Part shown: piece after piece, positions 30,021 to 64,000 of the stretch
Numbering within the stretch: the first letter of the stretch is position 1
Layout of the letters: the number at the start of each line of letters is the position of its first letter
Origin: Nageia nagi
Taxonomy: Eukaryota > Plantae > Pinophyta
DNA length: 64,000 bases
Reading direction: 5' to 3'
Assembly: GCA_050084985.1 (NCBI GenBank)
Contig: JBITNC010000002.1
Location: 36,952,001-37,016,000 of the forward strand
Made by a program: the position numbers and the translations under genes
The notes under the pieces: model-generated
Told to the model about the DNA's origin: nothing
Seen by the model: the letters and a program-made list of their open reading frames with translations, nothing else
Databases searched by the model: none

Positions 30021-30157
30021 ACATAGTTTACTCATAAATTTGATCATGAGATAAATGATCGATAATAAACTACTAATGGTCAAGTGATAAAACATAGTTA
30101 TTTATCTACAATTTTTAGTAGTTTATTTAGTCATATATTGCTACTTTTGTATTAGTG

Positions 30158-33540: not shown

Positions 33541-35486
33541 TTTAATAGTATCAAATAAAGAATCAATGTGATAGTTTTAAGGTAAAATAAGTTTGTATAG
33601 GCTTACTATGATCTTTCCTTTACATTGATAAGATTTCTTGTACACTTTCAATAATGAAGAAGTGTATGGTAGTATTTGAACATAATTGTTATATAAAATG
33701 TTTGATTTATGGATAAAATAAATAAAAATTAAAATTAAAGCTAATAAGGTCCAAAGAAATGATTATCTAAATAAGGAAGAGAAGCCAATTTTGGACAAAG
33801 AAGAAAAAATCACAATAATTGAAATAAGCATGGAGATGTATACAATTTGAAAGAATTTAATATATTTAACTCATTTAAAAGTCTTTGTAGTTTATAATAT
33901 TTAAAAGATATGATACACCAATGCGTAGAGAAAGAAGAAACCATATTCCAACATACTAAGACTAGTAAAGATGATGGGTAGAAAGAGATTAGTTAAGTAT
34001 AATACAATGAAGAAAGAAGGGAAATAGTACCATAATGATCAAATATAATTTCAAAATCCTTTGAAAAGATAAAATTGAAAAAGAAGATTCTAAATAAAAT
34101 AAAAACATTTTAAAAAAATGTAAAAAAGCATAAACAAATAATATCATACAATTTGCAAGATGTTCAATTTACAATTGTTAGCATGGAAAAAATAGTAAAG
34201 AATAATAAAGTGTTAAAGATCAATCATATGCTTTTATTTTTTAGGAATATTAACTCCTTTAATTTATTCTTGGGAGTGAGAGAGTTTTTCCCTACTTATT
34301 GAATTTTTATTTTTTTCAAAACAATTGGGGGCAACTCAAGGAGGTGATTAATTAGTTAATTAATTTTAAGATGATTTCAATCAATCATATTTAGGGTCCT
34401 TGGTATGTAAACACATTGTGGTATACCAATGTATACAGTTTATGAATAACTTCAAGAGTTATAGAGTTCATTTGATTGAGAGGTTAAATTTAATTAGAAA
34501 GTCCTAGAAGTTGGTTATTTAGCAATTAAGAAAATAAAAAAATAAGATGAAAACAATGATTATTAGAATTTTTATTGAAGTATTATTTATATCATTTTTA
34601 TGAATTAAGTATAATGGAGAATGATGATGCCTAAACATTAGTTTCAAATGCTTCATTTAATCTTTACTCAACATCATAGGAGAAAATTCCTAGAGAATAT
34701 ATATAATGATGTACGATGTATAAAAGATTTTTCTTTTTCAATTCTCTAATTTATTTTCTTGTTATTCTCAATATTTTAATCTATTCCAAAATGTAAGTGC
34801 AGGCTTATTTTCTTAGTCTCTACTTTTGCAATTCAAGTAATTATAGTAATTCAAATATTTATTTGGTATATATGTAGCATAAAGTGGAATTTTGCTCCTT
34901 ATATTTATGGTGATAGTTCCAAGGAGTGCAACCAAGGTATTATGAATGAAGGTAGATAATCTCATCTATAAAGGAAGGAAAGATTGTTCTTTATGAATCA
35001 TGGTATAATTTAAACCTTCATAGATACATCGATACATAATATCGTTCTATGTCTCTTGACACCATCTATCAAGTTTGGATATGTGCATTCATTACTATGC
35101 TCCTTATTCATGATAATATAGTTTATGTTTTACATATTATTAGGAATTCTTGAAAGTTCATGCAAAATATTCAAAGGTACTAAAGGAGGAAGCAATATGA
35201 TAACATACCATTATACATTATCACACCATAATATGCTAGCATAATGTGCTTATGATGAATAAAGGTCTGAGTTTGATGAGTATATTGACTAAATCTTCTT
35301 GATCCTAAATATGGGCTTCAATCCATAGAGAATAGTTAAACATAATGTTTGTAGTTCATTTGATTTTAGATTTTATTAGATCAAGGTCAATTGAAATATT
35401 AGGTCTCATTTAAATTATCTATGGATTTAATTAATATTATTATATATTATAATTGATATTAAATAAATTGAGAAAAATTAACTTTT

Positions 35487-39900: not shown

Positions 39901-41918
39901 CACGATAATCGACTAAAATTTTGCTACATATTCTTTAATTGAACTCCTTTTCTTCACTTTCATCAAATATTTGATGTAATTATCCTCATCGTTTTACTCA
40001 AATAATTCTATTATCCTTCTACCAAATATGTTAAAGGAGGTAATGGCTACATATTCATATCTACTCATGCTATGCTATTACTAGTCATATGCTATGCTAT
40101 TCAAGTGTAGGATTGAAAGTCATATGGCATCCTCCTCTATCATGAAATTAAGCATGAAGTAAGTTTGTAACTCCTATAACCATATGCTTACATTCATCTT
40201 ATTACTTCTATCAAACAAGGGAACCTACATTCTTCTCATCCTTTGTTCTAGATATATTCTATCCTCTTGTGATCCCCCATGAGAATAACTTATATTAGCC
40301 TTCTTAAACTTAGATGTATTCAAAGAGTACTCTTGATACAACTAGTTGAGCTAAAGTGGAGATATCACACTTACATTACTCTCTTCCCTTGGAAAAATAT
40401 TGGCTTGCTAGGACATGGTGGAGGTATCATGGCCATTTTTGGTGCATTCCTCTTGAAGAATCTCCCTATCAATGACTCTCTAGCAAGTGGATATTTGATT
40501 GATCTTATCTTTAATAGTGAGTATTCCCCATATTCCACCATAATAGTAGATCTAGACCTCTAAAAAATAGGTTATTATTGATAAAAATCTAAGCATCCTT
40601 GATTTCATCCTAGGCCTCCTCAATAAAACCCTAGGCTTCTAGATATATGATGTGTGGCTTCCTCTTCTCCTAGATCCTTATCATGAGTCCTATGTAGGGA
40701 TGCTTCTCCTCCCAACTTCCTTTCATGAGTGGAAGTAGATCTTTGAGTGTGGGGTGTTCTAGGGCTTCCAAGCCTAATGTCCCTCTCCTATGCTTCTCTT
40801 TGGGATATGCACTCATTTTGTTGCTATATTTTCTCTTTAATATTTTTCATCATACTTAGCAAGTTATCAAATATCTATTTCACTAGATCCATGGATGGGA
40901 TCTTCCTCTCCTCATACATATTCTCTTCTTCATATGCCTACTCTAGTTCATTCATCTAACTTTGTTGAAATGCATCTTTATGTTGCCTCCCTACATCATC
41001 CTTGGATCTAGTCTAAGGTGCCATGGGAGACTTTTTCCCTTTCCAGTATGAGTAAACCTTCTCAACTAAAGATTGCATTCAATAAAACTCCTACAATATA
41101 GAAGTACTATATCTATAATACCACTATGATATTTCCAAATTATTCTTATTCCATATTAATAATGAATTAAGCAATAATTTAGGAAATGAGCTAAAATAAT
41201 AAAATTATGCAATAGAATATCCAATGCACAAGCAAGAATGAAAGAGAAATGCTAACACGTCAAATTATATCAATGATAGAAAAATATACAATCAAATAAA
41301 TATAAGAGGGCTAATGTTTAGCTCTATGGACTAAATATAGGGTATACACTCTCCAAATGATGACATCTTATAGCTAGGACCTTCAAACATTGGATTTGGG
41401 TTGTAAAGTTGGTCTAACTAAGGGTTTACATCCTTAGCCAAAGTCTAGAAAAGGCTACATCTTATGAAACTCTTCACCATGATGGGTTTCCATACAATGA
41501 GAGGCTTAACAAGTGGTGCTACTATTCCAAAGATAGAATATGTCAAATGTATTCAAGATATCCCCTCAATGTTGTATCAACCAAATACATAGGAATCCCT
41601 TACGGTTGTTCATAAGCACACCCCTAAAGGAAATGTCATGTGTAAGCATCTGGATCATGCCTTAGGATCACTCCATATCATGCTCCCATATTCAAATCAT
41701 GTGTTGTTCCCTAAGATCTATATCATTACACTTAAAATTATTGTAATCTATGTCTAAGAGGAAGACATCCCACTTTGGGGCTCACAATTGGTCCATGGGA
41801 CTATAAGTCTCCTATCCCATGTTATAATGATGCTTAAGTACAAATGTGACTAATTAAGTAAATAATATTAACTACAAAACCACCTTAAAAGTAATGAATT
41901 TTGAGAGGGAACATAACA
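36905..41918 (-). mobile_element. Non-autonomous Gypsy-derived LTR element with gag and protease only (TR-GAG-like)
   Basis: LTRs 36905-37698 and 41125-41918 (794 bp each), TSD AAGTT/AAGTA, degenerate PBS at about 41112-41123, PPT next to 37699. Protease VLIDLGSAHNFINE. No RT, RNase H or integrase core seen in the 3.4-kb interior. Confidence 0.85.
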
Positions 41919-42216
41919 AAGTAATTAAACATCATTTCATGATTTGAGCTCTTAGATAATCATAATGAAATATTGACAACATCCATACTTTTTATCTTTG
42001 AAAGAATATTTATATTGCAAAAATAAATTTATTTGAGTATATAACATTAGCTATACTATTCCTAGGTATTTAATCCATTAATTATATACCTCTAAGGTTC
42101 AGTAGGGAAATATTATGCTAGCATTAATGTTGGGAACAATGCTAATCCTAGAAAACACACCTTTTAATGCCATTAATTTAACAACATAAAAATTGAAGTA
42201 GCTAGAAATGGAGGTA

Positions 42217-45200
42217 TACAATAATGCTTAAGTTGACATGTAACTAATTAAGTAAATATTCCTAATGACAAAACTACCCTTAAAAGGAACAACTTCTAAA
42301 AGGGAACATCATAGTCCTCCCTTCCTGAATTGATTGACCCCAAGCAATGCAAGATTGTTGCATATCATTACTTATTCATAATGATAATGTGTTGTATTCA
42401 ATGTATCATTGGAAACATCAAGATTCATACATGCTGTGAATGATTTTTGAAGTACAACTTTCATCATGTTAGCTTCATTAGTCATGTCTTACAAATAATT
42501 ATATATGAAATCTATTAACTCATATCTCCCTAGAAAGAATTAAGCCAATTTTGGATCTTCATCAATACCCCTTAGCAATACCAAGTATCTCATCCACCAT
42601 ATCCTCAACTGAACTCTAACGATAACCATTCAATCATCCTCAACCATCTACATAATTCTTGCATCTCTTTTATCCTGTAATATTGTCTTGCTCTCCTCCA
42701 ATGCAACCCATGAGGAATGGTAGGAATCATCCAAAATTCAATCCAAGAACTCCTAAAATGACCCATCTTTAAAAGTATTCAAACCATCATCAAGTGTAAT
42801 TGTGATATCACCAAGTGCCATAAACAAGTCTATTACATATTGGATGCCTTCAATCTTGCAATGAGAGTTTTTCTAAGTAATCTTGAAGAAGATAATTAAT
42901 GTTCCTCTTGTAGAAACTAGTAAGGCATGTTCCTGTGCTATGCTTGGAATAAATGTTACCAAAACACTTCTTGTCTCATCAACCACTAATGTAATCCTCC
43001 ATGCATACATTCTATTATCCAAGCCATCAACAAATGATGTAAAAATAGAAAATATTTTGATAGTATACCTTACAATCTTCATGATATGGAGTAGAGCCTC
43101 CATTTCCCTTATATTAAGAGATTTTTCCTCCAAACTTACTTCCATACCCTAGTCACATGCTACCATTGGACATGTTATCTTCTCTAAATTTAAAATACAG
43201 TAAAAAAAATTAATGAATCAACATAATCATGCAAAGCATACCGTCCAAGGATTGGACAAGTATCTTACTAATTGGTGGAATGAGAACTCAAGAGTGTAGA
43301 GATGCTCCTAAATCCCTTATAAGCCAAATATCCCACATGCACTTTGGAGGGGTTCTTCTCTCCTTCCACATCCTTCTTTCCTAGTCATCCATATTCATGC
43401 ATCATCTCCAAATGACTAGATGAACCCTTAGAAAAGTAGTCGTTTATGCCTTGCAGTGTAGATTCCTTTCTATCGAAGTCAAATTTCATCACTAAATTTT
43501 GATAATTTGAGAAGATATCTCCCAAATTATATAGCCACTAGATACTCCAAAACTTAAATGTAGAATACTATATAAATGGTAGACATAGAAGTCCTCCCTA
43601 GCCACATATTCTTGGCTGATTACACAAAATTTCTCCACTATTCTCTCCACCATCGTAAGTTTCCTATTTACATTATTCATACAGAAGCCTTCAAACTCCT
43701 TGCTCTTAAGGTCCTTATTTCATATAAATTCCTCATCGATGAAGTTATGGATGGATCCTAGATCTATCAATACCATAACCTCTTGATTTACAACCATATA
43801 TTTGAACTTAAGTATGAAGTATCTGGGTGCCCACATAATAATATGATCATTCATCCTATGGCATTCTTACTATTAGGAGTAGGAAGTTATTACTTACGAT
43901 CAAATCCAACTTCAAGTTCGAATCATCATCCTATGAGATCACCTCAATATAGTGAAGTTTTCCTCTATCTAAGAACCTATGACCATACTCCCAAGGTTTC
44001 TTGCAACTAAAATAAAATTTTCTCTTCCTCAACTTGTTCTTATTGTTAGGAGCATGCAGTTCTTCTTTATGATCAAATCCTCCTAAATCTAGCTCTAAGT
44101 TTGAATCATTATCCTTTGAGATCATCTTAATATAGTGAAATTATCATTTTCCTAGGCACCTATGGAAATGCTCCCAAGGTTTCTTGTAACTAAAATAAAA
44201 TCTTCTTTTGATAGTTGAAGGTATCATATCTACCATCCATCTTCTAATTGTCCCTATCTTGGTTGGAGTAGTGGGCTTGATCCTCATCATGCTGGGCTCA
44301 AAATCTAACACCCTTTTGATGGCATATTGCAATTATGTTCGGTAGAAATCCTTCACTAATCCCCTCCAAGATTATACCAAATGTTTCATCAAGAGGAAGG
44401 TAACCCTCTTCATTAAAATGCTAGGAATCATCATGATAATCCACTAAAATTTTTCTATATATTATTCAATTGAACCCTTTTACTTCACTTCCATCAAATA
44501 TTTGAAGTAATTATCCTCATATTTTTTTTAAAACTATTCTATCATCCTTCTTTTAAATACATCAAAGGAGGTAATGGCTCCATATCCCTGTATAGTCATG
44601 CTATGCTGCTACTAGTCATACACTATGCCATTCAAATGTATGATGGTAAATTATATGACATCCTCCTCCATCTTGAAATTAAGCATGAAGTATTTTTGTA
44701 ACTTCTATAACCATACCCTTAAATTCATTTTATTACTTCCATAAAATAAGGGCACCTGCATTCTTCTTAGCCTCTATTGTAGATCTCTTCTATCCTCTTG
44801 TGATCCCCCATGATAATAACTTCTTCTATCCTTGTTTTCCAAAAGTTCCAAGTACATGGATAAGGTAATATCACTCTTCAACTTAGGTGTATTCAGAGAG
44901 TACTCCTGATACAATTGGTTGAGCTCAAGTGGAGATATCACATTTATATTACTATCCTAACTTGGAAAAATATTGGCTTGCTGGGACATGGTGGAGGTAT
45001 CATAGCCATTTTTGGTGCATTCCTCTCAAGGAATCTCTCCATCAATGACTCTCTAGCAAGTGGATATTTTATTGATATTATCTTGAATAGTGAGTATTCC
45101 CCATCTTCCACCATACTAGCATATCTGGACCTCTAAAACATAGGTTCTTATTGATCAAACTCTAAGCATCCTTGATTTCATCCTAGGCCTCCTTAATAAA

Positions 45201-48200
45201 ACCCTAGGCCTCTAGATATATGATGTGTGGCTTCCTCTTCTCCTAGATCCTTATCATGAGTCCTATGTAGGGATGCTTCTCCTCCCAACTTCCATTCATG
45301 AGTGGAAGTAGATCTTTGAGTGTGGGGTGTTCTAGGGCTTCCAAGCCTAATTTCCTTCTCCTATGCTTCTCTTTCGGCCATGCACTCATTTTATTACTAT
45401 ATTTTCTCTTTAATATTTTTCATCATACTTAGCAAGTTATCAAATCTCTATTTCACTAGATCCATGGATGGGATCTCCCTCTCATACATCTCCTCTACGT
45501 CATCCTTGGATCTGGTCTAAGGTGCCATGGGAGATCTTTTCCCTTTCCAGTACGAGTAAACCTTCTCAACTAAAGATTGCATTCAATAAACCTCCTACAA
45601 TATAGAAGTATTATAGCTCTGATACCACTATTATATTTCCAAATTATTCTTATTCCAAATTAATAATGAATCAAGCAATAATCTAAAAAATGAGCTAAAA
45701 TAATAAAATTATGCAATTAAATATCCAATGCATAAGCAAGAATGAGAGAGAAAAGCTAACACCTTAAATTATATCAATGATAGAAAAAGATACAATCAAA
45801 TAAGTCTAATAGGGCTAATGTTTAGCTCTATGGACCAAATATAGGGTATACGCTCTCCAAATGATGACATCAAATAGCTAGGACCTTCAAATGTTGGATT
45901 TGGGTTATAAAGTTGGTCTAACTAAGGGTTTACATCCTTAGCCAAATTCTAGCAAAGGCTACATCTCATGAAACTCTTCACCATGATGGGTTTCCATACA
46001 ACGATAGGCTTAATAAGTGGTGCTACTATTCCAAAGATAGAATATGTCAAATGTATTCAAGATAGCCCCTTAATGTTGTATCAACCAAATACATAGGAAT
46101 CCCTTATGGTTGTTCATAAGCACACCCCTCAAGGAAATGTCATGTGTAAGCATCTGGATCATGCCTTGGGATCACTTTATATCATGCTCCCATATTCAAA
46201 TCATGTGTTGTGCCTTAAGATCTATATCATTACACTTAGATTATTATAATCTATGTCTAAGAGGAATAAATCCCAATTTTGGATCTTCATCAATACCCCT
46301 TAGCAATACCAAGTATCTCATCCACCATATCCTCAACTGAACTCTAACGATAACCATTCAATCATCCTCAACCATCTACATAATTATTGCATCTCTTTTA
46401 TCCTGTAATATTTTCTTGCTCTCCTCCAATGCAACCCATGAGGAATGGTAGGAATCATCCAAAATTCAATCCAAGAACTCCTAAAATGACCCATCTTTAA
46501 TAGTATTCAAACCATCATCAAGTGTAATTGTGATATCACCAAGTGCCATAAACAAGTCTATTACATCTTGGATGCCTTCAATCTTGCAATGAGAGTTTTT
46601 CTAAGTAATCTTGAAGAAGATAATTAATGTTCCTCTTGTAGAAACTAGTAAGGCATGTTCATGTGCTATGCTTGGAATAAATGTTACCAAAACACTTCTT
46701 GTCTCATCAACCACTAATGTAATCCTCCATGCATACATTCTATTATCCAAGCCATCAACAAATGATGTAAAAATAGAAAATATTTTGATAGTATACCTTA
46801 CAATCTTCATGATATGGAGTAGAGCCTCCATTTCCCTTATATTAAGAGATTTTTCCTCCAAACTTACTTCCATACCCTAGTCACATGCTACCATTGGACA
46901 TGTTATCTTCTCTAAATTTAAAATATGGTAAAAAAAATTAATGAATCAACATAATCATGCAAAGCATACCTTCCAAGGATTGGACAAGTATCTTACTAAT
47001 TGGTGGAATGAGAACTCAAGAGTGTAGAGATGCTCCTAAATCCCTTATAAGCCAAATATCCCACATGCACTTTGGAGGGGTTCTTCTCTCCTTCCACATC
47101 CTTCTTTCCTAGTCATCCATATTCATGCATCATCTCCAAATGACTAGATGAACCCTTAGAAAAGTAGTCGTTTATGCCTTGTAGTGTAGATTCCTTTCTA
47201 TCAAATTCAAATTTCATCACTAACTTTTGATAATTTGAGAAGATATCTCCCAAATTATATAGCCACTAGATACTCCAAAACTTAAATGTAGAATACTATA
47301 TAAATGGTAGACATAGAAGTCCTCCCTAGCCACATATTCTTGGTTGATTACACAAAATTTCTCCACTATTCTCTCCACCAGCGTAAGTTTCCTATTTACA
47401 TTATTCATACAAAAGCCTTCAAACTCTTTGCTCTTAAGGTCCTTATTTCATATAAATTCCTCATCGATGAAGTTATGGATGGATCCTAGATCTATCAATA
47501 CCATAACCTCTTGATTTACAACCATATATTTGACCTTAAGTATGAAGTATCTGGGTGCCCACATAATAATATGATCATTCATCCTATGGCATTCTTACTA
47601 TTAGGAGTAGGAAGTTATTACTTACGATCAAATCCAACTTCAAGTTCGAATCATCATCCTATGAGATCACCTCAATATAGTGAAGTTTTCCTCTATCTAA
47701 GAACCTATGACCATACTCCCAAGGTTTCTTGCAACTAAAATAAAATTTTCTCTTCCTTAACTTGTTCTTATTGTTAGGAGCATGCAGTTCTTGCTTCTGA
47801 TCAAATCCTCCTAAATCTAGCTCTAAGTTTGAATCATTATCCTTTGAGATCATCTTAATATAGTGAAATTATCATTTTCCTAGGCACCTATGGAAATGCT
47901 CCCAAGGTTTCTTGTAACTAAAATAAAATCTTCTTTTGATAGTTGAAGGTATCATATCTAACATCCCTCTTCTAATTGTCCCTATCTTGGTTGGAGTAGT
48001 GGGCTTGATCCTCATCATGCTGGGCTCAAAATATAAGACCCTTTTGATGGCATATTGCAATTATGTTGGGGATAAATCCTTCACTAATCCCCTCCAAGAT
48101 TATACCAAATGTTTCATCAAGAGGAAGGTAACCCTCTTCTTTAAAATGCTAGGAATCATCATGATAATGCACTAAAATTTTGCTATATATTATTCAATTG

Positions 48201-50122
48201 AACCCTTTTAATTCACTTCCATCAAATATTTGAAGTAATTATCCTCATATTTTTTTAAAACTATTCTATCATCCTTCTTTTAAATACATCAAAGGAGGTA
48301 ATGGCTCCATATCCCTGTATAGTCATGCTATGTTGCTACTAGTCATACACTATGCCATTCAAATGTATGATGGTAAATTATATGACATCCTCCTCCATCT
48401 TGAAATTAGCATGAAGTATTTTTATAACTTCTATAACCATACCCATAAATTCATTTTATTACTTCCATAAAATAAGGGCACCTGCATTCTTCTTAGCCTC
48501 TATTGTAGATCTCTTCTATCCTCTTGTGAGCCCCCATGATAATAACTTCTTCTATCCTTGTTTTCCAAAAGTTCCAAGTACATGGATAAGGTAATATCAC
48601 TCTTCAACTTAGGTGTATTCAGAGAGTACTCCTGATACAATTGGTTGAGCTCAAGTGGAGATATCACACTTATATTACTATCCTATCTTGGAAAAATATT
48701 GGCTTGCTGGGACATGGTGGAGGTATCATAGCCATTTTTGGTGCATTCCTCTCAAGGAATCTCTCCATCAATGACTCTCTAGCAAGTGGATATTTTATTG
48801 ATATTATCTTGAATAGTGAGTATTCCCCATCTTCCACCATACTAGCATATCTAGACCTCTAAAACATAGGTTCTTATTGATCAAACTCTAAGCATCCTTG
48901 ATTTCATCCTAGGCCTCCTTAATAAAACCCTAGGCCTCTAGATATATGATGTGTGGCTTCCTCTTCTCCTAGATCCTTATCATGAGTCCTATGTAGGGAT
49001 GCTTCTCCTCCCAACTTCCATTCATGAGTGGAAGTAGATCTTTGAGTGTGGGGTGTTCTAGGGCTTCCAAGCCTAATTTCCTTCTCCTATGCTTCTCTTT
49101 CGGCCATGCACTCATTTTATTACTATATTTTCTCTTTAATATTTTTCATCATACTTAGCAAGTTATCAAATCTCTATTTCACTAGATCCATGGATGGGAT
49201 CTCCCTCTCATACATCTCCTCTACGTCATCCTTGGATCTGGTCTAAGGTGCCATGGGAGATCTTTTCCCTTTCCAGTACGAGTAAACCTTCTCAACTAAA
49301 TATTGCATTCAATAAACCTCCTACAATATAGAAGTATTATAGCTCTGATACCACTATTATATTTCCAAATTATTCTTATTCCAAATTAATAATGAATCAA
49401 GCAATAATCTAAAAAATGAGCTAAAATAATAAAATTATGCAATTAAATATCCAATGCACAAGCAAGAATGAGAGAGAAAAGCTAACACCTTAAATTATAT
49501 CAATGATAGAAAAAGATACAATCAAATAAGACTAATAGGGCAAATGTTTAGCTCTATGGACCAAATATAGGGTATACACTCTCCAAATGATGACATCATA
49601 TAGCTAGGACCTTCAAATGTTGGATTTGGGTTATAAAGTTGGTCTAACTAAGGGTTTACATCCTTAGCCAAAGTCTAGCAAAGGCTACATCTCATGAAAC
49701 TCTTCACCATGATGGGTTTCCATACAATGACTACTATTCCAAACATAGAATATGTCAAATGTATTCAAGATAGCCCCTCAATGTTGTATCAACCAAATAC
49801 ATAGGAATCCCTTATGGTTTTTCATAAGCACACCCCTCAAGGAAATGTCATGTGTAAGCATCTGGATCATGCCTTGGGATCACCCCATATCATGCTCCCA
49901 TATTCAAATCATGTGTTGTGCCTTAAGATCTATATCATTACACTTAGATTATTGTAATCTATGTCTAAGAGGAATAAATCCCACTTTGGGGCTCACAATT
50001 GTTCCATGGGACCATAAGTCTCCTATCCCATGTTATAATGATGCTTAAGTACACATGCGACTAATTAAGTAAATAATCTTAACTACAAAACCACCCTTAA
50101 AAGGAACGACTTCTAAGAGGGA
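42217..50122 (-). mobile_element. Tandem dimer of the same gag-protease element (period ~3727 bp), both outer LTR ends truncated
   Basis: Paired ORFs at 42873/46601, 43783/47511 and 45320/49046. Intact PBS (GCTCTGATACCA) before the LTRs at 45629 and 49355. Left LTR reduced to ~95 bp; middle LTR deleted at about 46275; right LTR lacks its terminal bases. Confidence 0.92.
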
Positions 50123-50399
50123 TCTTAAATGATAAGAGCATAAAACTTAGAAGGGATTGGAGACTAGTTTAAGTAATTACAATTTTCTAGTTAGACTAAG
50201 TAGGTTAACCTTCTAATCTAACAATTTCCTATTTGAACCTAATATGAGGGATTTTCAGAGATTTTGTTTTGAATTTGACCGTGAAAGAGAGATATTCCTA
50301 GATAAAATGAAATAAAATTATCTTTTTCATAATAATTAAATTTATATCTTATATTTGATGTATTAAGGAATAAAAATTTATTTTTTAATCAAAATTGTA

Positions 50400-52150
50400 A
50401 CATTGAAAGAACATAACCTCATACCTAATCATAATTTATTTAACATCTTTAGCTTATATAATAAAGGCTTCTCCAAACTTATCACTATCCTTGAAAAATT
50501 ACAGATGTGTGACTTCACCCAATCTATTTGAGAATTGAAGTCCTTTGATTTATCTTAATAGTTTTAAGTTGTAATAATTCTTCCTAGGAAAATGTCCACA
50601 ATGATTGAAAGTGTTTGTAATATGATATCCTCTTTTTTATAAGATATAAGTTCTTTCAAAATATTCAATAAGGATTCCATTAAAACTAGAATGGATAAGC
50701 TAGGTGTTAAGATGTGTTGGTTATAATATTTATCCAATGAAAAGAAAGCCCAAATTTCTCTAAGAGAATGACCAAGAACTTTGATGATACTCTATTATAA
50801 AACTTACATCAAAATTTATGATTATACATGCACTCTTATTTTTCGCTACTAAGTGCATAATCTTATGTCCCATGAAAATACTACCATCTAATATTTATGT
50901 ACTATTTAAAAAATATTTTATGGATATAGAATAATGTACATAAAATTCTATTCAACCTTATAGCAATTGCCTTCGTGATCATCTTGTAGGTGATATTGCA
51001 TAAGCTTATACGTATGAACTCCATGATGTTTATGGTTAGTTGATCAATTTTTATTAGGGTGATAAAAAGGGTATTCGTATTTTTGTTGACACACACTTTA
51101 TCTTATATGTCATGAATCAATTTCACTATATGCTCCTTTATAATATTCTAAATCTATTGAAAGAAACCATTTGGCCTAGAAGCCTTTTTCATAAGGAAAA
51201 GAAGTGGTCCTTTATTATTTTACTATGACAATTTCATATTTGAGTTCCACTTTAGAGCTATAGTAAAGTTTCTAAAAATAATCTTCAGAATCTTCTAAAC
51301 CTCCTTTGTATTCTTTCTTTGATTTTCCTCAATATGTCCTCTAAAAAGTTGATAATTTGTTCTTTTATTACTTCTATGTTGATTATATTAAGCCATGTTA
51401 TGGAAAATATCTTCTATACTTTATGGTTCTTTAGTTTTCATAACTATTATATGAAATAAAAAAGTGTCATATCTCTTTTTTTGGGTGCAAATTCTTGAGA
51501 CTTTTATTTACATTTGTTCTCTTCCTCATTTAACATGTTAAGATAACCCATTAGGAAATTTTTATCCTCTACACTTAAAATTATATATTCACCTCTCTCT
51601 TTCAACTTTCTTATTTATATGATCCATTTCTATTTTTTTTCCATATTATATTAAAATCAAAATAAATAAAGTATAAATTGAATCTTTAATTTAGTAGACA
51701 TAATTTGCTTACTTGATACTTTTACATAGATTTCCTACCAATCTTTGATACTATCCTTGATATGCTTATGTTCTAGTTAGATAAGTATAAATCTTGATAA
51801 AAAAAACTTCTTTCATTAATAGCCTTCTCTATAATTATAAGGATTATATTATGATTTGAACCTATCCTTGAAGAGAATATATTTTATTTTCCATCCTTTC
51901 AATATACCATCTATGACTTATTCATGTTCTATAAGCCCATATTAAATAAAGTATTTCCCTAATCCTTGAAGAGAATATAGTTTATTTTCCATCCTTTTAA
52001 TATATAATTTATTATTATTCACATTCTATCAAGTCCATATGAAATAAAGTATTCCCCTAATCCTTTATTCTATCCATGTGTAATATACTCCATCCACCCA
52101 AATATCCATAAAATTCAATTAGTCTTGAAGATGATAAGACTTCAAGTTCT
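50400..52150 (-). mobile_element. Strongly decayed LINE ORF2 fragment (endonuclease end to RT)
   Basis: RISLCNITYKMITKAIAIRLNRIL (cf. RPISLCN..YK..AK.IANRL) and a KA.G.NGF-like motif near 51165-51187. Boundaries approximate. Confidence 0.75.
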
Positions 52151-53256
52151 ATTGCTTTTTTCTAGATAGTAAGATTTTAAGCTTTATTTCTTTATAATAA
52201 TAATGCTCAATACGATAAGACTTGAATCTCTATTTCTTTGTAATAATAATAGAAACTCATAGAAAATGATAAATTTTTAAGCTTTCACCAAAATTAATGA
52301 TACAATTTTAGATGTCTATATTCATAAAAAATTTTGAACATCTACATTAATTAGCTTTTATATAACCCCTTATATATCACGAAAAATATCATTCCTAAAG
52401 GTACCTATCTTGGATATAGTAAATTATTACAGTAAAATGATTCTAATTAGTTTTATTTTGTGATTTGAAATTAATTAAACAATTTATTTATATATAAAAA
52501 ATATTTATTAAAATTAATATAGTCCATTTTGTATTAAAATTTTAATAAAATGAAAATAGTCAACCAAATATTTATGACAACACGACATTTAAGGGATGCT
52601 AAAAAATTTAAGAAAATTGAAAGATATTAAAAGATGAGAAAAATTCTAGTAAATTGAAAATTACTTTTGATATGGGAAAATATTTTATAATAAATTGAAA
52701 TTAAGCATTTGTATAATAGCTAAATTATTAAATATTTTCATTCATTTTATAATATTATTATTACTATGATACTAAATCTCTTGATATGATTTCATTTTAA
52801 ATTAAATACTTTCTTGATCATCATATGATCTTAATTTTTCCTCTCTTCATTCATTCATTCATATATATAGTCTTTAGTTAAGAGGATTTGTAGGTTAGAT
52901 AAAAAAGAGCAAGGGTGTATCATCTTATTATTTTTTCATTCTTGAGATGCATACAAAATTATATATATCAAACTCTACTTTATTTTAAAGGATTCTTAGG
53001 TCATATGAGAAGAGCATGGGTGCGTAATCATTTTTTAACCTAACTTTTTTTTAGGGCTTCACGCATGCAGAATCATATATATTGTATATTATTTTTACAT
53101 ATCAAACTCTACTTTAGTTTAGAGGATCATAGGATACATGAAAAGAGAACATGTGAAGGGTTTCATAAGGTGCGGGTGAAGGTCTTCATGAGGGTTTCAT
53201 GAGATCAATGTGAAGTGTTGCATGTGAAGAACATCGTTGAAGGGATCAAAAATAAG

Positions 53257-53603
53257 GTTTGAAGGGCTGCACACAAAGAATATAGTTGAAGGAAAATCTG
53301 ATGCTTGAAGGGTTGAAGGGATCAAACATGAGGTTTGAAGGGTTGCATGCAAAGAATATAGTTGAAGACAAATATGATGCTTGAAGGGTTGTATAAGAAT
53401 GATATGGTTGAAGCGATACATGAGAAGGATGGGATGATAGCTTGAAAGATCTACAATTCATTCAAAGGGCTGAAGATTAATGAGATCTATGAGGTATGCA
53501 TGATATTGAAACTAGATTTATGAGGTATGCATAATATTGAAATGAGATCTATGAGGCATCCATAATGTTGAAATGAGATCTATGAGGCATGCATAATAGT
53601 AAA
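53257..53603. repeat. Short tandem repeats: ~59-bp block twice (76-bp period) and four 31-bp units
   Basis: GTTTGAAGGG.TGCA..CAAAGAATATAGTTGAAG at about 53257 and 53333. ATGAGATCTATGAGG.ATGCAT.ATATTGAA-like units at 53480, 53511, 53542 and 53573. Confidence 0.9.
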
Positions 53604-55074
53604 ATGGATGATCCTGCTAAAACTAAGTGAGGTTCATTATATAAGATGGTTCTTGATTGGAAGAATGTAAACTAACATACAATTTCATATTATTAGTTGA
53701 AATTTAATTTGTAGGTTATGGATATAAAATATGATAGATATTCATATTTTTAACCCTATCATATTTTTATTTTTGTATTATTTTAGAAATTAAATTTGTT
53801 ATTCAATTTGGAGGATGAAGGGAAATGGTGGATTGTAGAAGTGCAAAGGAGCCCAAAGAAAATGTGAAGCGGTAGTAGAGGAAGATAAATTGTGATCAAA
53901 GTAAGGCTAAATTATTTCAGGAGCAAGGACAAAAGATCAAAAATAAATTTTTAGAAAAAGTGAGGTACATTAATCTTTATACAAGTATCATTTTTTGTAT
54001 TTTTCAAAATCATCATCAATTGTTGATTAATATATTGAAGTTTTTAGTAAGTATGATGTAGTGAAAGAGAAATATTTATTTTCTTAATTTGAATCTAAAT
54101 TTAAAATAGTTTATATATGGAATCATCTAGAATAATTTAATAAAAATACATCATATAGATTAGTATTTGGATTATTCTTAGATTACTCTTTCCTCTATGC
54201 TCTACCGATATTCTCTATATATTTATTTTCTTATCATAATTATTATAAATAACATATTATACCATGTTTGTTATTGATATATGTAAAAATTATTATTCAT
54301 TTATTATCTTTTTCATCTATATATTATGAGAATAATGTGAGTGAATGATTCATCTAAAGATAGAAATTGGCTTCACAAAGATTGTAAGATTGTGGTAGTA
54401 TCTCCACCAATAATAAAATAAAATATAATCATAAGATAATAAACTTTCAATACATAATACTTACAGTTGTAGCAAATTATTTTTTCTTAACAATCGAAAA
54501 TTAAAGGATTTATGTGACACAAGATATATTTTTTGGTACATTTGAAGATAGAGTTTTTACGTAATATTTAATTATTAAATACTTTATTTCGTTTAATTTA
54601 TAATTTTTTTTTTTACTGCTAAATGTCATGATATGACTGTATTTTAGATTGTATATTTACCACAATTCATATAATATTATTTAGAGCTTGATATCATTTT
54701 TATATTAATTCTGAAAATTAAATAATGATGTAGTTTAAAAGGAGGACAATTGTGCATTATTGAAGTGCAAAGGGGTCAAAGGAAATATTGGAAAGCCAAA
54801 AAGAATAGGAGCCACGAGGACAAAAGATATAAACAAAAGAGTTAAAGAAAGAAATAGGTATATTTATCTTCTCACAAGTATCGATATGAATGATTTTTAT
54901 CATCATTAATTCAATTGAATATATTACCTTTTTGTTAAGTCTAAGATTGTTAAAAAGTTTTTATTAATTTGTTAATTTAATTTTTGTAGGAAATCATTTA
55001 TATGAAAAAGATTAAAATATTTAATGATAATAAACATTTTTAGTGTTTTTTCAAATAATTTTTTTAATTACATA

Positions 55075-55104
<30 letters not shown>
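55075..55104. repeat. (AAT)10 microsatellite
   Basis: Direct reading. Confidence 0.95.
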
Positions 55105-55105
<1 letters not shown>

Positions 55106-55474
55106 TGACAATTAATATTATATTACTTCATAGTACAAATACAATTAGAATTTATTATTTTTTATATTATATATTATAAAAGTGTAAGCTAATAATATAT
55201 ACATAAAAATTACATGTTAAAATTGTTTTTTTTTTTTTTTTTCAATTTTATAAAGTATGCTTGCTTAACATTTGATAGTTTATTTTATATTTGAAATATT
55301 TAGTTTATTGTTTTCTCTATTTTAACTTAAATTTAATATAAATGTAATATTTATTAAATTTTGTAAAATAATAATTATATAAATTAATATATTTATAATC
55401 CATATAGCTAAGTAAATTTCTTTTAGATTATTTGCAAATTTTTCTTTTAATAAAAATGAAATCTGTTAACAGAG

Positions 55475-56636
55475 ATGACTAATCCAAGAAAGAGAGGTAG
55501 AGGGAGACCTTTTGGTTCTATAATTGTAGCAAACCCGAAGGGCTTTCTGAAGAGTGGATAACAAGAGTTAAATACAGACCATGTGGAAGAATTGATCGGG
55601 TATGATCATTTTTCATTTATTGCTTTGAATTTGCATTTCAAACTTTTAAATTTTTATTTATTATCATAACTGTTCTTTATTCATTGTGTAGTATTATATC
55701 AACATCTATGTTGATCATATTTTTCGTTCATGGAAAGAAGTTGAGTATTTTGAAGCTAATGGTCAAATACGTCCACAAGCTACCCGTCAAAAACGTCAAC
55801 AAAAACCAATGTCAAAGAGTAAGTTTTTTAAGTTTTTGAACAACAATATATAGTACTAAACTTTATTTCTTTAAAATATATAATTATTATTATATTAATA
55901 ATTTTATTTTTATTTAGTTAAAACATTTTGAAGATGAAAATGTTTTATTTTTATTTTTTAAATATATATAAGTATTTTATCAATTATTTCTGGATGTAGA
56001 TATTTCATTGTTCTGTGATTGATAGCGTAGAGAAATGAATATAAATGATATCATTGTAAGTTGATTTTACTTTATTTTATTTTATTGTAATATAAATAAT
56101 ATAATATTACTTTTGATGTAGGACATCACTTGTTGAAAGATGCAGCTATAAAGACACAAAGAGGTCATCCAAGAGTTGATGACATTGTTAAAATACCACG
56201 CATGCACCTTCAATTCTTGTTAGGTGTGATACTGAACTCAAGCCTCCCTAAAGTTTCTTACTCGGATTTGTACCAGAATGAGGTGAAGAAGTTACAAGAA
56301 TTAAACATTGAGTTGTGGCCAATTGCAAGGCATTTAATCTTTTGGTGCTCAGTTAGAGATTTTGGCCAATACAGAAAGCCATCTACAGCTATGGATCAAT
56401 CAAGTTCATCAAAAGATCTCTGGAGAGATGTAGAGAGGGATAAAGGTTATAGAGGGCTTAGCTACACTGTTAAGGTTCCAGGCAGCCACCTTGAGTGCTT
56501 GCTTCAGTTCATATTAAACTCACAGATGCCCAAAAGATCATTTCTGGATTTAAATGAACATCAATTGCTAAATTTAAACAAGTTACACCCTGCATTAAGG
56601 CCATTGGGTGTATATGTAATTAGTTTCTTTTTATAA
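55475..56636 (+). CDS. Spliced methyl-CpG-binding domain (MBD) protein gene: AT-hook + MBD + duplicated C-terminal domain; exons 55475-55599, 55692-55818, 56122-56636; one apparent frameshift near 55519 (gene or young pseudogene)
   Basis: GT-AG introns with matching phases (0 then 1) give KPEGLSEEWITRVKYRPCGRIDR|YYINIYVDHIFRSWKEVEYFEANG...MSK(R)HHLLKDAA..., which has the MBD pattern L...W......R..G..D.YY.......FRS..EV. It is preceded in another frame by MTNPRKRGRGRPFGS. Confidence 0.8.
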
Positions 56637-59149
56637 ACTGTGTCAGTAATACTTTGGTTGTGCGAGGCATATTTATGTAGCAAGATTTTCAAATATCAAG
56701 ATTGATATATTGTCTTAGTTTTTATTTTAAATATCTAATTTAAGGGAAGATTGAAGATTATTTTTTTATGGTTCTCTATTTTTAATATGCAAACCTATCC
56801 ACTCTTCATGCTTGGCCCCAAAGAAAAGGATTTTATATTGTAACAGTTTTGTTATGTTCATTGATTAATTAGCTATTTTTGGGCTATAGAGGTAGTTCAA
56901 AAATATTGGGTAAAGTAGTTTATAAGGAAGGGACTAGCTGAAACAGTGCTCAGATCCTTTTCATCTTTTACATGCTCAGTTGAAGCATCTTTGTCATATA
57001 GGAAAGACTGCAGCAAAGTATGATGGCTACGGATGTGTATTTTGTGCCTACTTGCTCATGAAGGTGCTAGGAACCAAGGACATGCATGTATGCAGCATTT
57101 CATATCTTTTGTGTGTGTCTGTAAGGAGGCCTGTGTGCCTTGATCATGTAATAGAGTCTGTGTTTAGTGAGGTATTGGTTAGTGTTGCAGGCAGTTGAGA
57201 AGGCCCTATTGATTGTACTAATTGAAATCAGTGTATGTTGCACTCCCTGCCCATTTGCATCTCCCCATACCTTCTTCGACTTTCTTTGTCCATTCTCTTT
57301 GTTTGTATTCTTTTCTGTTATTTTGGAAAGAATAATGTTGCAAGCACAACTATTGGGTAGATTGATAGTTGAGGATTAGCTTGGTGTTTACATCACACCC
57401 AGAAAGTAACCTTTAGCTTGGTCATAACAGTTTTCCCAGGAATTGGATTGAGTACCATCTATTATGGATTTTATATGATTTCAATCCAAAGGACAGATTA
57501 AGATATTGATTTTGTAAACTTGATTATCTAATTATTATTGAATTGTCAAATGCTTTTTACAATATTTTGTATTTTTATAAAGCGATTATATTTAGATATG
57601 ACTTAATTTTTAACTAAATATATTTTGTTTTATTTATAGTAGTTATCCAACAAGAATGTTTTAGGTTTTAATTTAGAATAGATTAATGTTGAAACATAAA
57701 TAATAATATTCTCCAATATCAACATGAAGAATGCTTGCTTCATCTGAAACCACTGTTATTTTTCACTTGTATAGCAACCCTTCTTCACAGGAAGGCTGAT
57801 ATGAATTCAATTATAGCAAGACCCATTGAAACATCACCACAACTGCTACTGAAGCCAAATGTGCCATCACCAAAAACCCCAGCGTCACTACAGGGATTGA
57901 TGCTAGTAGTCTCCTCCGCCACCTCATTCAAAGTCTTCCATGCACCAATGTGATTGATTCTAGTAGTTTCCATCACCAATGTGACTTATGCTATTAGTTT
58001 CCACCACCAAAAGACAATGCAGGTCCTACCTGGTTTTAGACACCACCTGAAGTAAACCTGCTTTACTTGTCAAGTTGAATAAGAAGTTGATGTCCTCCTG
58101 TGTGAACTCAGCAGTAACCACATTGAAGGGATGTCTTCCATGTAACCACATTGGTATTCATACCATGTATAGATTCAAAATCAGATGATCCAGAATCTGC
58201 ATTACAAAATAAGGATAGATTATTTGCATTATTTTGTAAAGGTAAAAAGTTAAAAAATTGTGGGAACAATTGATCTTAAACACACAGAGATTTCCTCGTA
58301 CCACTTTCCGAACCATTTGCGAAATCTGTTTATGAGGATTATTCTTCAACTTTCAGCAACTGTTGTTTGGAGATTATTATACGATGACTAGAAACCTACC
58401 TCTCCGAGCTTGCTTTTCTACAAATGAAGAAGCTGGAAGGACTGCATATTATACGTCAAGACAGGAATTAGGATTTAAAAACATAAATATGAAGAATCAA
58501 ATCTTATATTAAACTAATGTTAAGAGCATTATTTATATGAGGGAAATTTCTGTTCCAATATTGAATAGTCATGTTTTATGATCTTTAATTGCATATATTT
58601 GTAATGATTACTGTAAATAATCTTGTTGGCCATAAGGGTGAAACTAAATATAATTCTATTTGAAATGGTAAATACTTACTAAAAAAATATAAATATGAAT
58701 GTAATTAAAAAAAATGGAAAAGTAAAGATTAATATAATATGATAAATATTTAGCTTTATCCATTGAATCTTACAAATTCAAAGATAATTTAGATATTTAC
58801 AAAATAAAAATATTAGTAGGATCACTCACTTTATTATATTATTAATTTTAATTTTTTTGAAAATAAACAAAATCTCAAATATAATACCATGACTTTAGAT
58901 TATAGTGTGATCCTCATTAATGCATGATGTTGAATATGAATAAAAAATTTGATATCTTATATCATTTGAAAATAAAAACACTTTTAAGATCAAATCATTC
59001 TTCTATCTTTATAAATAATTAACTTTAGGTCTTTGAAAATAAATTAAACATCAAAACAACTCTATTGTAGGCAATATTTGATCCTTTTGAGAGCATGATG
59101 TTAGATATGAATCCTAAGCCATATATTTGTAAAGATAAAAATATATTTT

Positions 59150-60140
59150 TCAATATATGTTTAGATCTTCCTCTTCTTCTTGTAACTCCTTTTTTAGATC
59201 TTCCTTTTCCTTCTTAAATTCTTCTTTTTCCTCACTCCCCTCTTAAGATTTAGAATAGAAAGAAGTCTAAGACAAAAACTTAATACAAAATCATGTTTCC
59301 TCACATATGAGGCGCATTTTTTTTATATTACTCCTAGAGGTTTTTGGCCCTTGAACCTTTGCAAAATTACACATAGGTCAGCTTGAAGCAAAATAAGTAG
59401 CATATCTTCCTAATATAACTTAATAGCCTAAAACATAACATTATATATGAAAATAATACAAATCTAAAGCAAAGATCCTACTTTTTACTATTGCTTTTTC
59501 CCTTAGATGATTCACTCTTTTCTTCCTCATCAACTTGTCTCAAGAATTTCATTGAGGCCCTGATATGTATAGCTAGTTCCACTCCTAGTAGTTTCATATA
59601 TGTCATAGTAGTTTGCGACATTTGGGACAAGTCTTTCATCAACTTGTGATTGATTTGAATGCATCAAGAGTTAGCTTCTAAGTTTCCTCCATTGACATTT
59701 TCCCCTTTTCCAATGTTAGCTCTTAGAGGGGTGGAAATTCAGTTCATTGCCTCTTCAACTACTTCTTTGAGATATGCTAACTCTTCATATGTTATTTCCT
59801 CCTCCGCATTATGTACTTCAATTTCCTCCTCCTCTACCTCTTGTGATCTTGCCACCTCCTCCTCCTTTGAAGCCTTCTTTTAATTCTACCTTCTTCTTGG
59901 ATATGGGTTCCATTGAATCAAATTCATCATTGTAGTTAACAATCTTCTTCTTGTTTCCTTTACTAATATGAGTAGATCTTTAAAATCCTTAAAACTTCCT
60001 CTTCTCTTCTATAAAGGAAAACCTTCTATTGCAAAGAGGTATGTTATCCTCCTCATCCTTCATCTATGGTACCTCTTCCACCCATATCTCTTTGCCTTTT
60101 GTTGATTCATTCCCTTTCCTCTTGGTGCAAAGAAACATTA
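59150..60140 (-). other. Degenerate Glu/Lys-rich coding-like remnant, probably transposon-derived
   Basis: Purine-rich minus strand with GAG/GAA/AAG runs interrupted by stops. No recognisable domain. Confidence 0.3.
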
Positions 60141-60146
60141 GCTATT

Positions 60147-60898
60147 TGTAACACTTAAATTTGGTCTACCTTAGGTATCCTTATTAGGTGTTTTGTTATA
60201 TTAATATTATATTATGTTATGTGCATTATGTTGTTCCACTTAAGATACTTCTTAGGTAATTTCATCTTTATTTTTGCAAGGTACCCCAACATCGATGTTA
60301 GCTTCTATGTGGAGGTTCACTTGCATATTTAAAGGTAAATATGATTACATGGGAAAGAATCAAGATCTGATCTTGATAGTTGATATATACATTTAAGTTT
60401 TTGTCAATGCTTCCTATTGAGATTAGGATCTTGTTATCACATGCGCATATATGTTATTTCATCTTCTGCAATTATATGTTTGGCTTAACTTATCGATACT
60501 TTGTTATATATTGGATCTTGGTTGTGAAGTTTACTCTTGAGATGCTTAGCATCTACATTTTCTTATGGGCTATAGCTACTATTCATGGGTCCATATTCAT
60601 GCTCCCTTGGGCATCCATGCTTTGATTCTAGTTTTCTGTTTTGCATGGAGATTCGCATATTGGGATCACTATCTTCGATAAGCTCTTGTATGCATATAAT
60701 ATTATTCATCCCAGGTAAGTTTAAGAGGTATATAACAATCTCTTGATCCCTTTCTCATCAGTGTTTGGTGTTATCTTGATCTCATAATCTAGATTCATTA
60801 TTTACTGTTACATTCATTTATATTTAGATTATTGTTCTTTGTTATCTTTACAGTTGGATCCATTTTTATCTTATTAATAAAGATAATACATTATCACA
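60147..60898. mobile_element. Possible solo LTR
   Basis: TGTAACAC...ATCACA, ~750 bp, composition distinct from flanks. No clear TSD and no second copy. Confidence 0.3.
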
Positions 60899-61741
60899 TA
60901 TAAATATTTAACATAGTTACTACTTATCTCATCCTAAGGATCACTAAAAATATTCAACATAATTACGACACCCACCTTTTTATAGCATATCCATCTCTTA
61001 ACCAGGGTTGAAATATTTGTTGTTTGAACCACAATATTTTAATTTTATGGTATCATATTTTCTATATAATTTTTCATAAGAAACCCTAAGTTTTATTTAA
61101 TTTTCTACAAAATTAGGAAACCCTAATGCTTTTACATTATTGAAAGTTTGAAGGTATTTTTATTTTGTAGAATTTTATTTTTGGTTAAAACCTTAGGTTT
61201 TGAACCTAATTTATGGGGATTTTATGCATATTTATACCCTACAACTTTGCCTAAACCTTATATATTCATGGTAGGTAATTTTTTAGAAGGTAAGATTAGG
61301 TCTATTTGCAAGCATTATGAAGGTATTTTGAGTTGAAGAATTTTTTTTGGGGTTTCATTTTTACATAAAACATTAGATTTTAAGCCTAATTTTTAAATAT
61401 TTGGTGGATGTTTATGCCCTAAAATTTTGCCTAATCCTTAGATATGCACGATAGAAAAACATGGGAAGGTGAAATTGAGATTATTATATGTATTTTTTTG
61501 AGGTTTTTGGTTAAGAAATAAATATTTTTATAGAAAAATCTAAATTTTCAAGGTGATTTTAGTCAATTTGGTTATTTTTTACATTAGAAAATCTTGTATT
61601 ACACATGTATATTTCATATTGGGATATTTTGGTGATTTTTCAAAAATTACATATTTTTGGATAATTTTTTATCAACAAAAATCCCAAAGGTTTTGGAGGT
61701 ATTTTATGTCTATTTCTTTGATTGTGATATATATGACAATA

Positions 61742-64000
61742 TCAGTAGGGAAATATTATGCTAGCATTAATGCTGGGAACAATGCTAATCCTAGAAAACA
61801 CACCTTTTAATGCCATTAATTTAACAACATAAAAATTGAAGCAGCTAGAAATGGAGGTATACAATAATGCTTAAGTCGACATGTAACTAATTAAGTAAAT
61901 ATTCCTAATGACAAAACTACCCTTAAAAGGAACAACTTCTAAAAGGGAACATCATAGTCCTCCCTTCCTGAATCGATTGACCCCAAGCAATGCAAGATTG
62001 TTGCATATCATTACTTATTCATAATGATAATGTGTTGTATTCAATGTATCATTGGAAACATCAAGATTCATACATGCTATGAATGATTTTTGAAGTACAA
62101 ACCTTCATCATGTTAGCTTCATTAGTCATGTCTTACAAATAATTATATATGAAATCTATTAAATCATATCTCCCTTGCTTTGCTATGATGCATAATTGAT
62201 CATAAATTGAAAAAGAAAGGTTCATAACAACTTTTGTTAGATATGTATCAATGTTGAGAAAGAATTAAGCCAATTTTGGATCTTCATCAATACCCCTTAG
62301 CAATACCAAGTATCTCATCCACCATATCCTCAACTGAACTCTAACGATAACCATTCAATCATCCTCAACCATCTACATAATTCTTGCATCTCTTTTATCC
62401 TGTAATATTGTCTTGCTCTCCTCCAATGCAACCCATGAGGAATGGTAGGAATCATCCAAAATTCAATCCAAGAACTCCTAAAATGACCCATCTTTAATAG
62501 TATTCAAACCATCATCAAGTGTAATTGTGATATCACCAAGTGCCATAAACAAGTCTATTACATCTTGGATGCCTTCAATCTTGCAATGAGAGTTTTTCTA
62601 AGTAATCTTGAAGAAGATAATTAATGTTCCTCTTGTAGAAACTAGTAAGGCATGTTCATGTGCTATGCTTGGAATAAATGTTACCAAAACACTTCTTGTC
62701 TCATCAACCACTAATGTAATCCTCCATGCATACATTCTATTATCCAAGCCATCAACAAATGATGTAAAAATAGAAAATATTTTGATAGTATACCTTACAA
62801 TCTTCATGATATGGAGTAGAGCCTCCATTTCCCTTATATTAAGAGATTTTTCCTCCAAACTTACTTCCATACCCTAGTCACATGCTACCATTGGACATGT
62901 TATCTTCTCTAAATTTAAAATACGGTAAAAAAAATTAACGAATCAACATAATCATGCAAAGCATACCTTCCAAGGATTGGACAAGTATCTTACTAATTGG
63001 TGGAATGAGAACTCAAGAGTGTAGAGATGCTCCTAAATCCCTTATAAGCCAAATATCCCACATGCACTTTGGAGGGGTTCTTCTCTCCTTCCACATCCTT
63101 CTTTCCTAGTCATCCATATTCATGCATCATCTCCAAATGACTAGATGAACCCTTAGAAAAGTAGTCATTTATGCCTTGCAGTGTAGATTCCTTTCTATCG
63201 AAGTCAAATTTCATCACTAAATTTTGATAATTTGAGAAGATATCTCCCAAATTATATAGCCACTAGATACTCCAAAACTTAAATGTAGAATACTATATAA
63301 ATGGTAGACATAGAAGTCCTCCCTAGCCACATATTCTTGGCTGATTACACAAAATTTCTCCACTATTCTCTCCACCATCGTAAGTTTCCTATTTACATTA
63401 TTCATACAAAGCCTTCAAACTCCTTGCTCTTAAGGTCCTTATTTCATATAAATTCCTCATGATGAAGTTATGGATGGATCCTAGATCTATCAATACCATA
63501 ACCTCTTGATTTACAACCATATATTTGACCTTAAGTATGAAGTATCTGGGTGCCCACATAATAATATGATCATTCATCCTATGGCATTCTTACTATTAGG
63601 AGTAGGAAGTTATTACTTACGATCAAATCCAACTTCAAGTTCGAATCATCATCCTATGAGATCACCTCAATATAGTGAAGTTTTCCTCTATCTAAGAACC
63701 TATGACCATACTCCCAAGGTTTCTTGCAACTAAAATAAAATTTTCTCTTCCTCAACTTGTTCTTATTGTTAGGAGCATGCAGTTCTTGCTTCTGATCAAA
63801 TCCTCCTAAATCTAGCTCTAAGTTTGAATCATTATCCTTTGAGATCATCTTAATATAGTGAAATTATCATTTTCCTAGGCACCTATGGAAATGCTCCCAA
63901 GGTTTCTTGTAACTAAAATAAAATCTTGTTTTGATAGTTGAAGGTATCATATCTAACATCCCTCTTCTAATTGTCCCTATCTTGGTTGGAGTAGTGGGCT
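61742..64000. repeat. Near-identical second copy of the block starting at 42099 (leader, truncated LTR, gag-protease element interior); runs off window end
   Basis: Homology starts abruptly at TCAGTAGGGAAATATTATGC (42099 and 61742). Same ORFs recur (62598 vs 42873/46601). Retains 82 bp that are missing in the first copy near 42531. Confidence 0.95.

Follow-up and report, generated by a model that had tools for sequence, protein, structure and literature searches.

[quoted passage not shown]

The proposed gene comprises three exons and two introns (Table 1). Its donor sites read CGG/GTATGA at 55599/55600 and AGA/GTAAGT at 55818/55819, the acceptor sites read TGTGTAG/T at 55691/55692 and GATGTAG/G at 56121/56122, and the exon phases are compatible (0 after exon 1 and 1 after exon 2, with a split codon A + GA). 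The G+C content is 41%, 33% and 38% in exons 1, 2 and 3, respectively, against 21% and 15% in introns 1 and 2, both of which are T-rich (49–54% T), and it is 0.12 in the 500 nt upstream of the ATG versus 0.41 in exon 1. This exon/intron composition is that of a genuine plant gene. Exon 3 is open over 171 codons up to its TAA; for a stop-free run of at least 170 codons, simulation gives an expectation of 0.005 per window, and of 0.115 per 64 kb if the sequence is simulated at the composition of exon 3 itself. The earlier note had described three exons with canonical splice sites and compatible phases, as well as an open exon of about 171 codons behind the MBD part, and the sequence bears out both descriptions.

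Table 1. Features of the candidate gene and of the duplicated segments, in window coordinates.
Feature	Positions	Strand	Remarks
Exon 1	55475–55599	+	ATG at 55475; AT-hook and N-terminal half of MBD-like domain
AT-hook PRKRGRGRP	55484–55510	+	Gly-Arg-Pro core with basic flanks
One-base difference site	55542–55543	+	Extra A behind 55542 in X1, X4 and X5 contigs
MBD-like domain, N-terminal half, LSEEWITRVKYRPCGRIDR	55543–55599	+	Trp, first Arg (KYRPCG), Asp of D-x-Y
TAA closing the ATG frame	55559–55561	+	After 28 codons, window as assembled
Intron 1	55600–55691	+	92 nt, GT..AG, phase 0, 54% T
Exon 2	55692–55818	+	C-terminal half of MBD-like domain, then basic linker
MBD-like domain, C-terminal half, YYINIYVDHIFRSWKEVEYFEANGQ	55692–55766	+	Tyr of D-x-Y, FRS with second Arg, start of helix
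Basic linker IRPQATRQKRQQKPMSK	55767–55818	+	End of exon 2
Intron 2	55819–56121	+	303 nt, GT..AG, phase 1, G+C 0.15
Exon 3	56122–56636	+	171 codons and TAA stop; orphan tail
Orphan repeat, copy 1	56148–56339	+	About 64 aa; self-comparison
Orphan repeat, copy 2	56430–56621	+	About 64 aa; self-comparison
Start of possible duplication, copy 1	42099–44277		Would extend to 61741, with the gene inside
Start of duplication, copy 2	61742–64000		98.2% and 99.1% identical to 42099–44277; cut by the window end

The window copy as assembled has a coding capacity of 28 residues only, since a missing base divides exon 1 between two frames lying one base apart. The frame opened by the ATG reads MTNPRKRGRGRPFGSIIVANPKGFLKSG and then the TAA, and the MBD-like frame, which has no ATG, contains a TAG at 55498–55500. 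This break had been overlooked previously. The claim that the AT-hook precedes the MBD within one gene is correct as to the order of the two parts, but in the window they lie in different frames and are joined only with an extra A.

Such an A was found in other sequence data. Logan contigs of four DNA runs, designated X1, X4, X5 and X7, were aligned to positions 55300–56800 at a likeness of at least 85%. In X1, X4 and X5, which are labelled as three different organisms and come from three studies, the additional A makes the codon GG + A (Gly), with which the AT-hook frame continues into the MBD part (..ANPKG LSEEW..), and the 767 coding bases of these contigs contain no further stop or indel. 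The presence of the A in three other read sets means that an intact form exists in the population, and the window therefore reflects an error of the assembly or else a null allele. X1, the best-matching run, which may be the assembled sample, differs from the window over 1.4 kb by two single-A insertions (behind 55364 and 55542) and one substitution, an indel-heavy pattern that suggests assembly error. Balancing the two explanations, we consider an assembly error only slightly the more probable and a real null allele nearly as credible. At 55364, as at 55542, X1 carries one more A in a run of A. Two single-base losses within 709 nt with no substitutions are themselves a hint of assembly indel errors. 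A tiny intron separating the AT-hook from the MBD was also considered as the cause of the frame change and rejected, as the gap measures less than 35 nt and what the reads reveal is an additional base.

The RGRP AT-hook that had been placed ahead of the MBD was confirmed: PRKRGRGRP is a canonical form of the motif, with the Gly-Arg-Pro core and basic flanks that characterise SMART SM00384 and Pfam PF02178. The window contains a single KRGRGRP heptapeptide, and none of 200 simulated windows contains one. A Pfam scan of the 28-aa piece encoded by the ATG frame returned no match, as is usual for the 13-residue AT-hook model. One variant in X5 changes the proline of the AT-hook to leucine.

The MBD-like part follows in two motif runs, LSEEW..KYRPCG..IDR in exon 1 and YY..FRSWKEVEYF in exon 2. 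Together they provide the DNA-contact signature of the family, namely an arginine finger, Asp-x-Tyr, and a second arginine in F/L-R-S followed by glutamate, in the form of KYRPCG, IDR/Y across the exon junction, and FRSWKE. KRGRGRP, LSEEWITRVKYRPCGRIDR and YYINIYVDHIFRSWKEVEYF are all present in the gene. KRGRGRP and the MBD half-motifs each occur once in the window, on one strand and within a span of at most 280 nt, against 0 to 0.15 occurrences expected per simulated 64-kb window, and the regular-expression forms of the MBD halves likewise occur once each against 0–0.075 expected, all these patterns having been written after the sequence had been viewed. One X4 variant replaces the proline of KYRPCG with serine.

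Profile searches were carried out on separate exon pieces, so that the domain, divided by the phase-0 intron, was represented by halves of 33 and 42 aa. Pfam, queried with four exon pieces singly at E values up to 10, returned no families; a phmmer search of PDB with three exon pieces recovered no MBD chain, the only match being a ribosomal S21 chain with E = 1; and exon 2 compared with 5.8 billion clustered proteins gave no candidate with enough shared words. In the ESM Atlas, which makes no use of the motif patterns, the first named match of exon 2 was a cluster from Streptophyta, made up of 34-aa fragments and bearing PF01429, with a score of 0.90, which is of lead grade, since shuffled sequences reach 0.9 in 4–10% of cases. 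This match has 209 of 256 features in common with exon 2, and all 10 of the 10 best family-bearing matches agree in family or clan. Because MBD was the family predicted beforehand, we regard the region encoded by exons 1 and 2 as very probably homologous to the MBD. The previous identification of an MBD thus has less support than had been claimed: it is backed by the positions of the Arg, Asp-x-Tyr and Arg (FRS) residues and, among the databases, by the PF01429 match, but not by the Pfam and PDB searches of the exon pieces.

By eye, the domain shares with MeCP2 and the animal MBD family (PF01429) the tryptophan, the arginine finger K-x-R-x-x-G, the Asp-x-Tyr, and the F-R-S arginine with a glutamate four residues on; the key residues of exons 1 and 2 presumably correspond to R111, D121, Y123 and R133 of MeCP2. 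MeCP2 carries AT-hooks too. Unlike in MeCP2, the loop between the first arginine and the aspartate is about 4 residues shorter, S-E-E-W replaces P-x-G-W, one extra residue precedes FRS and the helix has one residue fewer; neither exon piece gave a significant sequence match. The shorter loop and the S-E-E-W make methyl-specific binding uncertain, and we consider it possible but rather doubtful that the predicted domain would bind DNA in this manner.

Among small plant MBD proteins, MBD7 of Arabidopsis exerts its anti-silencing action together with IDM1 and the Harbinger-derived HDP1/2. The candidate gene resembles MBD5, MBD6 and MBD7 as a small plant MBD protein; unlike them, it offers no StkyC-like motif or alpha-crystallin-partner motif for comparison, and the likeness is drawn at the level of the family. 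The MBD7 complex is reported to oppose silencing (PMC4416881, PMC5339849). Binding of methylated cytosine in vitro has been confirmed only for MBD5, MBD6 and MBD7 (PMC13157976); the majority of plant MBD proteins (MBD1, MBD2, MBD4 and MBD8–MBD11) do not show it.

[quoted passage not shown] The candidate protein would have the same pair of domains, and the DNA in which it would work has a G+C content of about 30%. At the level of architecture, at which the two proteins are compared here, they differ in several respects: in the candidate protein the AT-hook precedes the MBD, whereas the AT-hook region of MBD8 (residues 174–269) is the part lost in a C-terminal deletion construct; the N-terminal LDL2-binding region of MBD8 is absent here; and the candidate protein has an orphan repeat tail instead. 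The pairing of MBD and AT-hook is therefore already known in plants from MBD8, and the gene considered here departs from it in the order of the domains, in its short loop and in having an orphan tail.

The tail encoded by exon 3 contains two copies of a repeat, which are 34% identical with 63% positives (E = 4e-12). No relatives of exon 3 were found among 5.8 billion clustered proteins indexed by words, in a complete HMMER search of 1.84 billion representative proteins, in Pfam at E values up to 10, or in the ESM Atlas. Neither a relative nor an exact 30-mer of exon 3 was present in metagenome contigs, the search for relatives having been made in those of JGI. A single-sequence AlphaFold2 model of exon 3 is all-helical and unreliable (pLDDT 38), and the predicted repeat is probably helical.

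The same runs allowed an estimate of coding constraint. There are 12 coding differences among X4, X5 and X7, of which 9 are nonsynonymous and 3 synonymous (602 and 157 sites), giving an omega of about 0.78; values up to 0.2 are disfavoured (P = 0.03), and a value of 1 fits. The divergence of X5 amounts to 5/767 in exons versus 6/555 in non-coding positions (P = 0.54), so the exons have not changed more slowly. For exon 3 of X7, the most diverged run, 4 nonsynonymous and 3 synonymous differences give a rough omega of 0.35 by hand count. As the runs are very close kin, with 97.5–99.6% identity (differences being counted on aligned pieces), the test is a weak one, and at an omega of about 0.8 the constraint on the coding sequence is weak or below what these data resolve. 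None of the listed runs carrying the locus is recorded as RNA, nor did any spliced joint appear among them. Air metagenomes contain 0.79–0.83 of the words of the stretch, which fits airborne plant material.

The methylation environment of the gene is reflected in its dinucleotides. The observed/expected ratio of CpG is 0.11 over the 64-kb window, 0.34 in the gene, 0.11 in exon 3 and 0.03 in the interior of a Gypsy element, while that of GpC over the window is 0.95; exon 2 retains 4 CpGs, with a ratio of 1.16. The window-wide depletion of CpG is the trace left by heavy CG methylation over a long time.

The proposal that the gene is multicopy and borne by a mobile element is not supported by the analysis of its surroundings. 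No second copy was found in the window by self-blastn or tblastn, and each of the four runs provided one contig path over the gene at a likeness of at least 85%, which argues against diverged paralogues; identical copies would merge into one path. In X1, the contig with exon 3 has twice the depth of the contig with exons 1 and 2, a depth that is not a measure of copy number. The gene is located in an 11.7-kb interval between an LTR array ending at 50128 and the next element, beginning at 61860. The 30 flanking ORFs of at least 55 aa that were tested in this interval (50128–61860) contain no Pfam transposon domains (transposase, reverse transcriptase, integrase), and a search for terminal inverted or direct repeats bracketing the gene yielded none, but only AT-rich chance pairs. 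The sole match of the interval to the rest of the window is 61742–61859.

This match belongs to a larger repetition, in which the sequence starting at 42099 recurs from 61742 onwards with 81 extra nt at 62176–62256 in the second copy. The visible part of that copy is its first 2.26 kb, and because the window ends there, a second copy of the gene would be beyond view; past that end, a tandem duplication some 19.6 kb in size may continue. The repeated segment is large and adjoins arrays of LTR retrotransposons, a pattern that speaks for segmental duplication and not for transposition, and the gene-bearing stretch probably lies within the first copy of a recent duplication of this kind. The earlier note had placed the gene in a duplicated block; the duplication stands at 98–99% identity, but the gene itself is not repeated in the window. 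The 19.6-kb unit was also considered as a transposon in its own right and rejected, since its start falls in the middle of an array of LTR elements.

Altogether, we lean towards a genuine three-exon gene of a narrow lineage, coding for an AT-hook, a divergent MBD-type domain and orphan repeats, broken in frame in this copy and not carried by a transposon, and we consider this somewhat more probable than not. The explanation that there is no gene at all, but only a chance open frame and look-alike motifs in AT-rich DNA, is hardly credible: three independent motifs stand in the right order between canonical splice sites of compatible phase, an open frame of this length is very rarely expected in simulated windows, the internal repeat of the tail is highly significant, exons and introns differ in composition, and the ESM Atlas pointed to the very family predicted beforehand, even though no exon piece has a profile match and the tail has no homologue. 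A more serious competitor, though in our estimate still unlikely, is a young gene that is decaying or was never functional, in which an MBD-derived fragment, fused to de novo sequence, is now subject to neutral drift within heterochromatin; the frameshift would then be a true null allele. An omega of about 0.78 and the similar divergence of exons and non-coding positions would fit such a relic, as would the broken frame of the window copy, the depletion of CpG in exon 3 to the level of the surrounding transposons, the tail without a homologue in the proteins searched, and the lack of an RNA run among the listed carriers. It fits less well with the open frame in three other samples, free of additional stops and indels over the whole coding length, the retained composition contrast and both sets of splice sites, the persisting likeness of the two tail repeats at the protein level, and the lower rough omega of exon 3 in X7.

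The third competitor is a multicopy gene that is borne by a mobile element and reads or counters the methylation of that element. Its model would be VANC, the anti-silencing protein of the VANDAL (Mutator-like) transposons; all that the two have in common is the idea that silencing could be opposed by a DNA-binding protein associated with repeats (PMC5735166, PMC10398659). Unlike VANC, the candidate protein has no similarity to any protein found, and its gene lies outside an element with termini and has no transposase nearby. The position of the gene between retrotransposon arrays, the repetition of its block from 61742 and the doubled depth of the exon 3 contig in X1 (which gives no copy number) are what this explanation can draw upon; it has to contend with the absence of bracketing terminal repeats, of transposase, reverse transcriptase or integrase domains in the 11.7-kb interval, and of any second window copy or divergent paralogue contig at 85% likeness or more in the four runs, as well as with a repeat of about 19.6 kb whose start in mid-array looks like segmental duplication. 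We regard it as very improbable; the transposon-borne, anti-silencing reading is unsupported, and so far nothing supports a transposon carrying its own methylation reader. One could also hypothesise that the locus is a recently born reader of heterochromatin, in which an anchor of AT-hook and MBD acquired the orphan tandem repeat as a new effector module, and whose copy number shifts through tandem duplication mediated by retrotransposon arrays, with intact and null alleles in circulation. We consider this scenario improbable, but if it were true, the gene could be a dosage-variable modifier of the silencing of the surrounding repeats.

Under the preferred reading of a genuine, narrowly distributed gene, its product would be a nuclear protein of about 260 aa composed of an AT-hook, a divergent MBD-type domain, a basic linker and two repeats of about 64 aa. 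The AT-hook would dock in the minor groove of repeat DNA that is very rich in AT and heavily methylated, and a contact in the major groove, possibly specific for methylated CG, might come from the MBD-like domain; the basic linker might serve as a nuclear-localisation signal, and the C-terminal repeats could bind partner proteins. Such a mode of action would resemble that of Arabidopsis MBD8, with its essential AT-hook and dispensable MBD. Judged from its sequence, the gene appears to be an unannotated, lineage-restricted variant of plant MBD genes with putative function and expression. Its architecture (AT-hook first, short-loop MBD, repeated tail) is outside the types described in Arabidopsis; if expressed, it would extend the plant MBD set by a lineage-specific member and offer a way to study how repeat DNA that is rich in AT and heavily methylated is read. 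The loss of one base in a coding exon of the reference assembly would conceal such a gene from annotation.

Outside the gene-bearing interval, the window is rich in transposons and other repeats. Copia gag/pol fragments are located at 8.3–9.1 kb, a reverse-transcriptase zinc-binding domain at 14.8–15.1 kb, and the interior of a Ty3/Gypsy element with protease, RNase H, integrase and SH3 domains at 19.8–23.6 kb. This interior is flanked by direct repeats (18247–18970 and 23690–24416, 87% identical), which probably represent the two LTRs of an old insertion. In the array at 36905–50128, an LTR-like piece of 0.8–0.93 kb alternates with a piece of 2.95 kb in three to four rounds at 86–98% identity. 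The 2.95-kb piece contains a remnant of a retroviral protease (RVP_2) on the minus strand, and the whole looks like a recombinant LTR-interior-LTR-interior array. A satellite with a period of about 370 bp is present at 3512–7276 in roughly ten copies of 73–77% identity, and also at 634–1231 and 1278–1778. A minisatellite at 29547–30021, with periods of 24, 36 and 84 bp, is open on both strands, and this repetition produces artefactual ORFs of 159 and 151 aa. Another repeat, dispersed and 1.8 kb long, is found at 1335–3128 and 31811–33599 with 80% identity and includes 111-bp tandem sub-repeats at 1948–2238 and 32428–32727.
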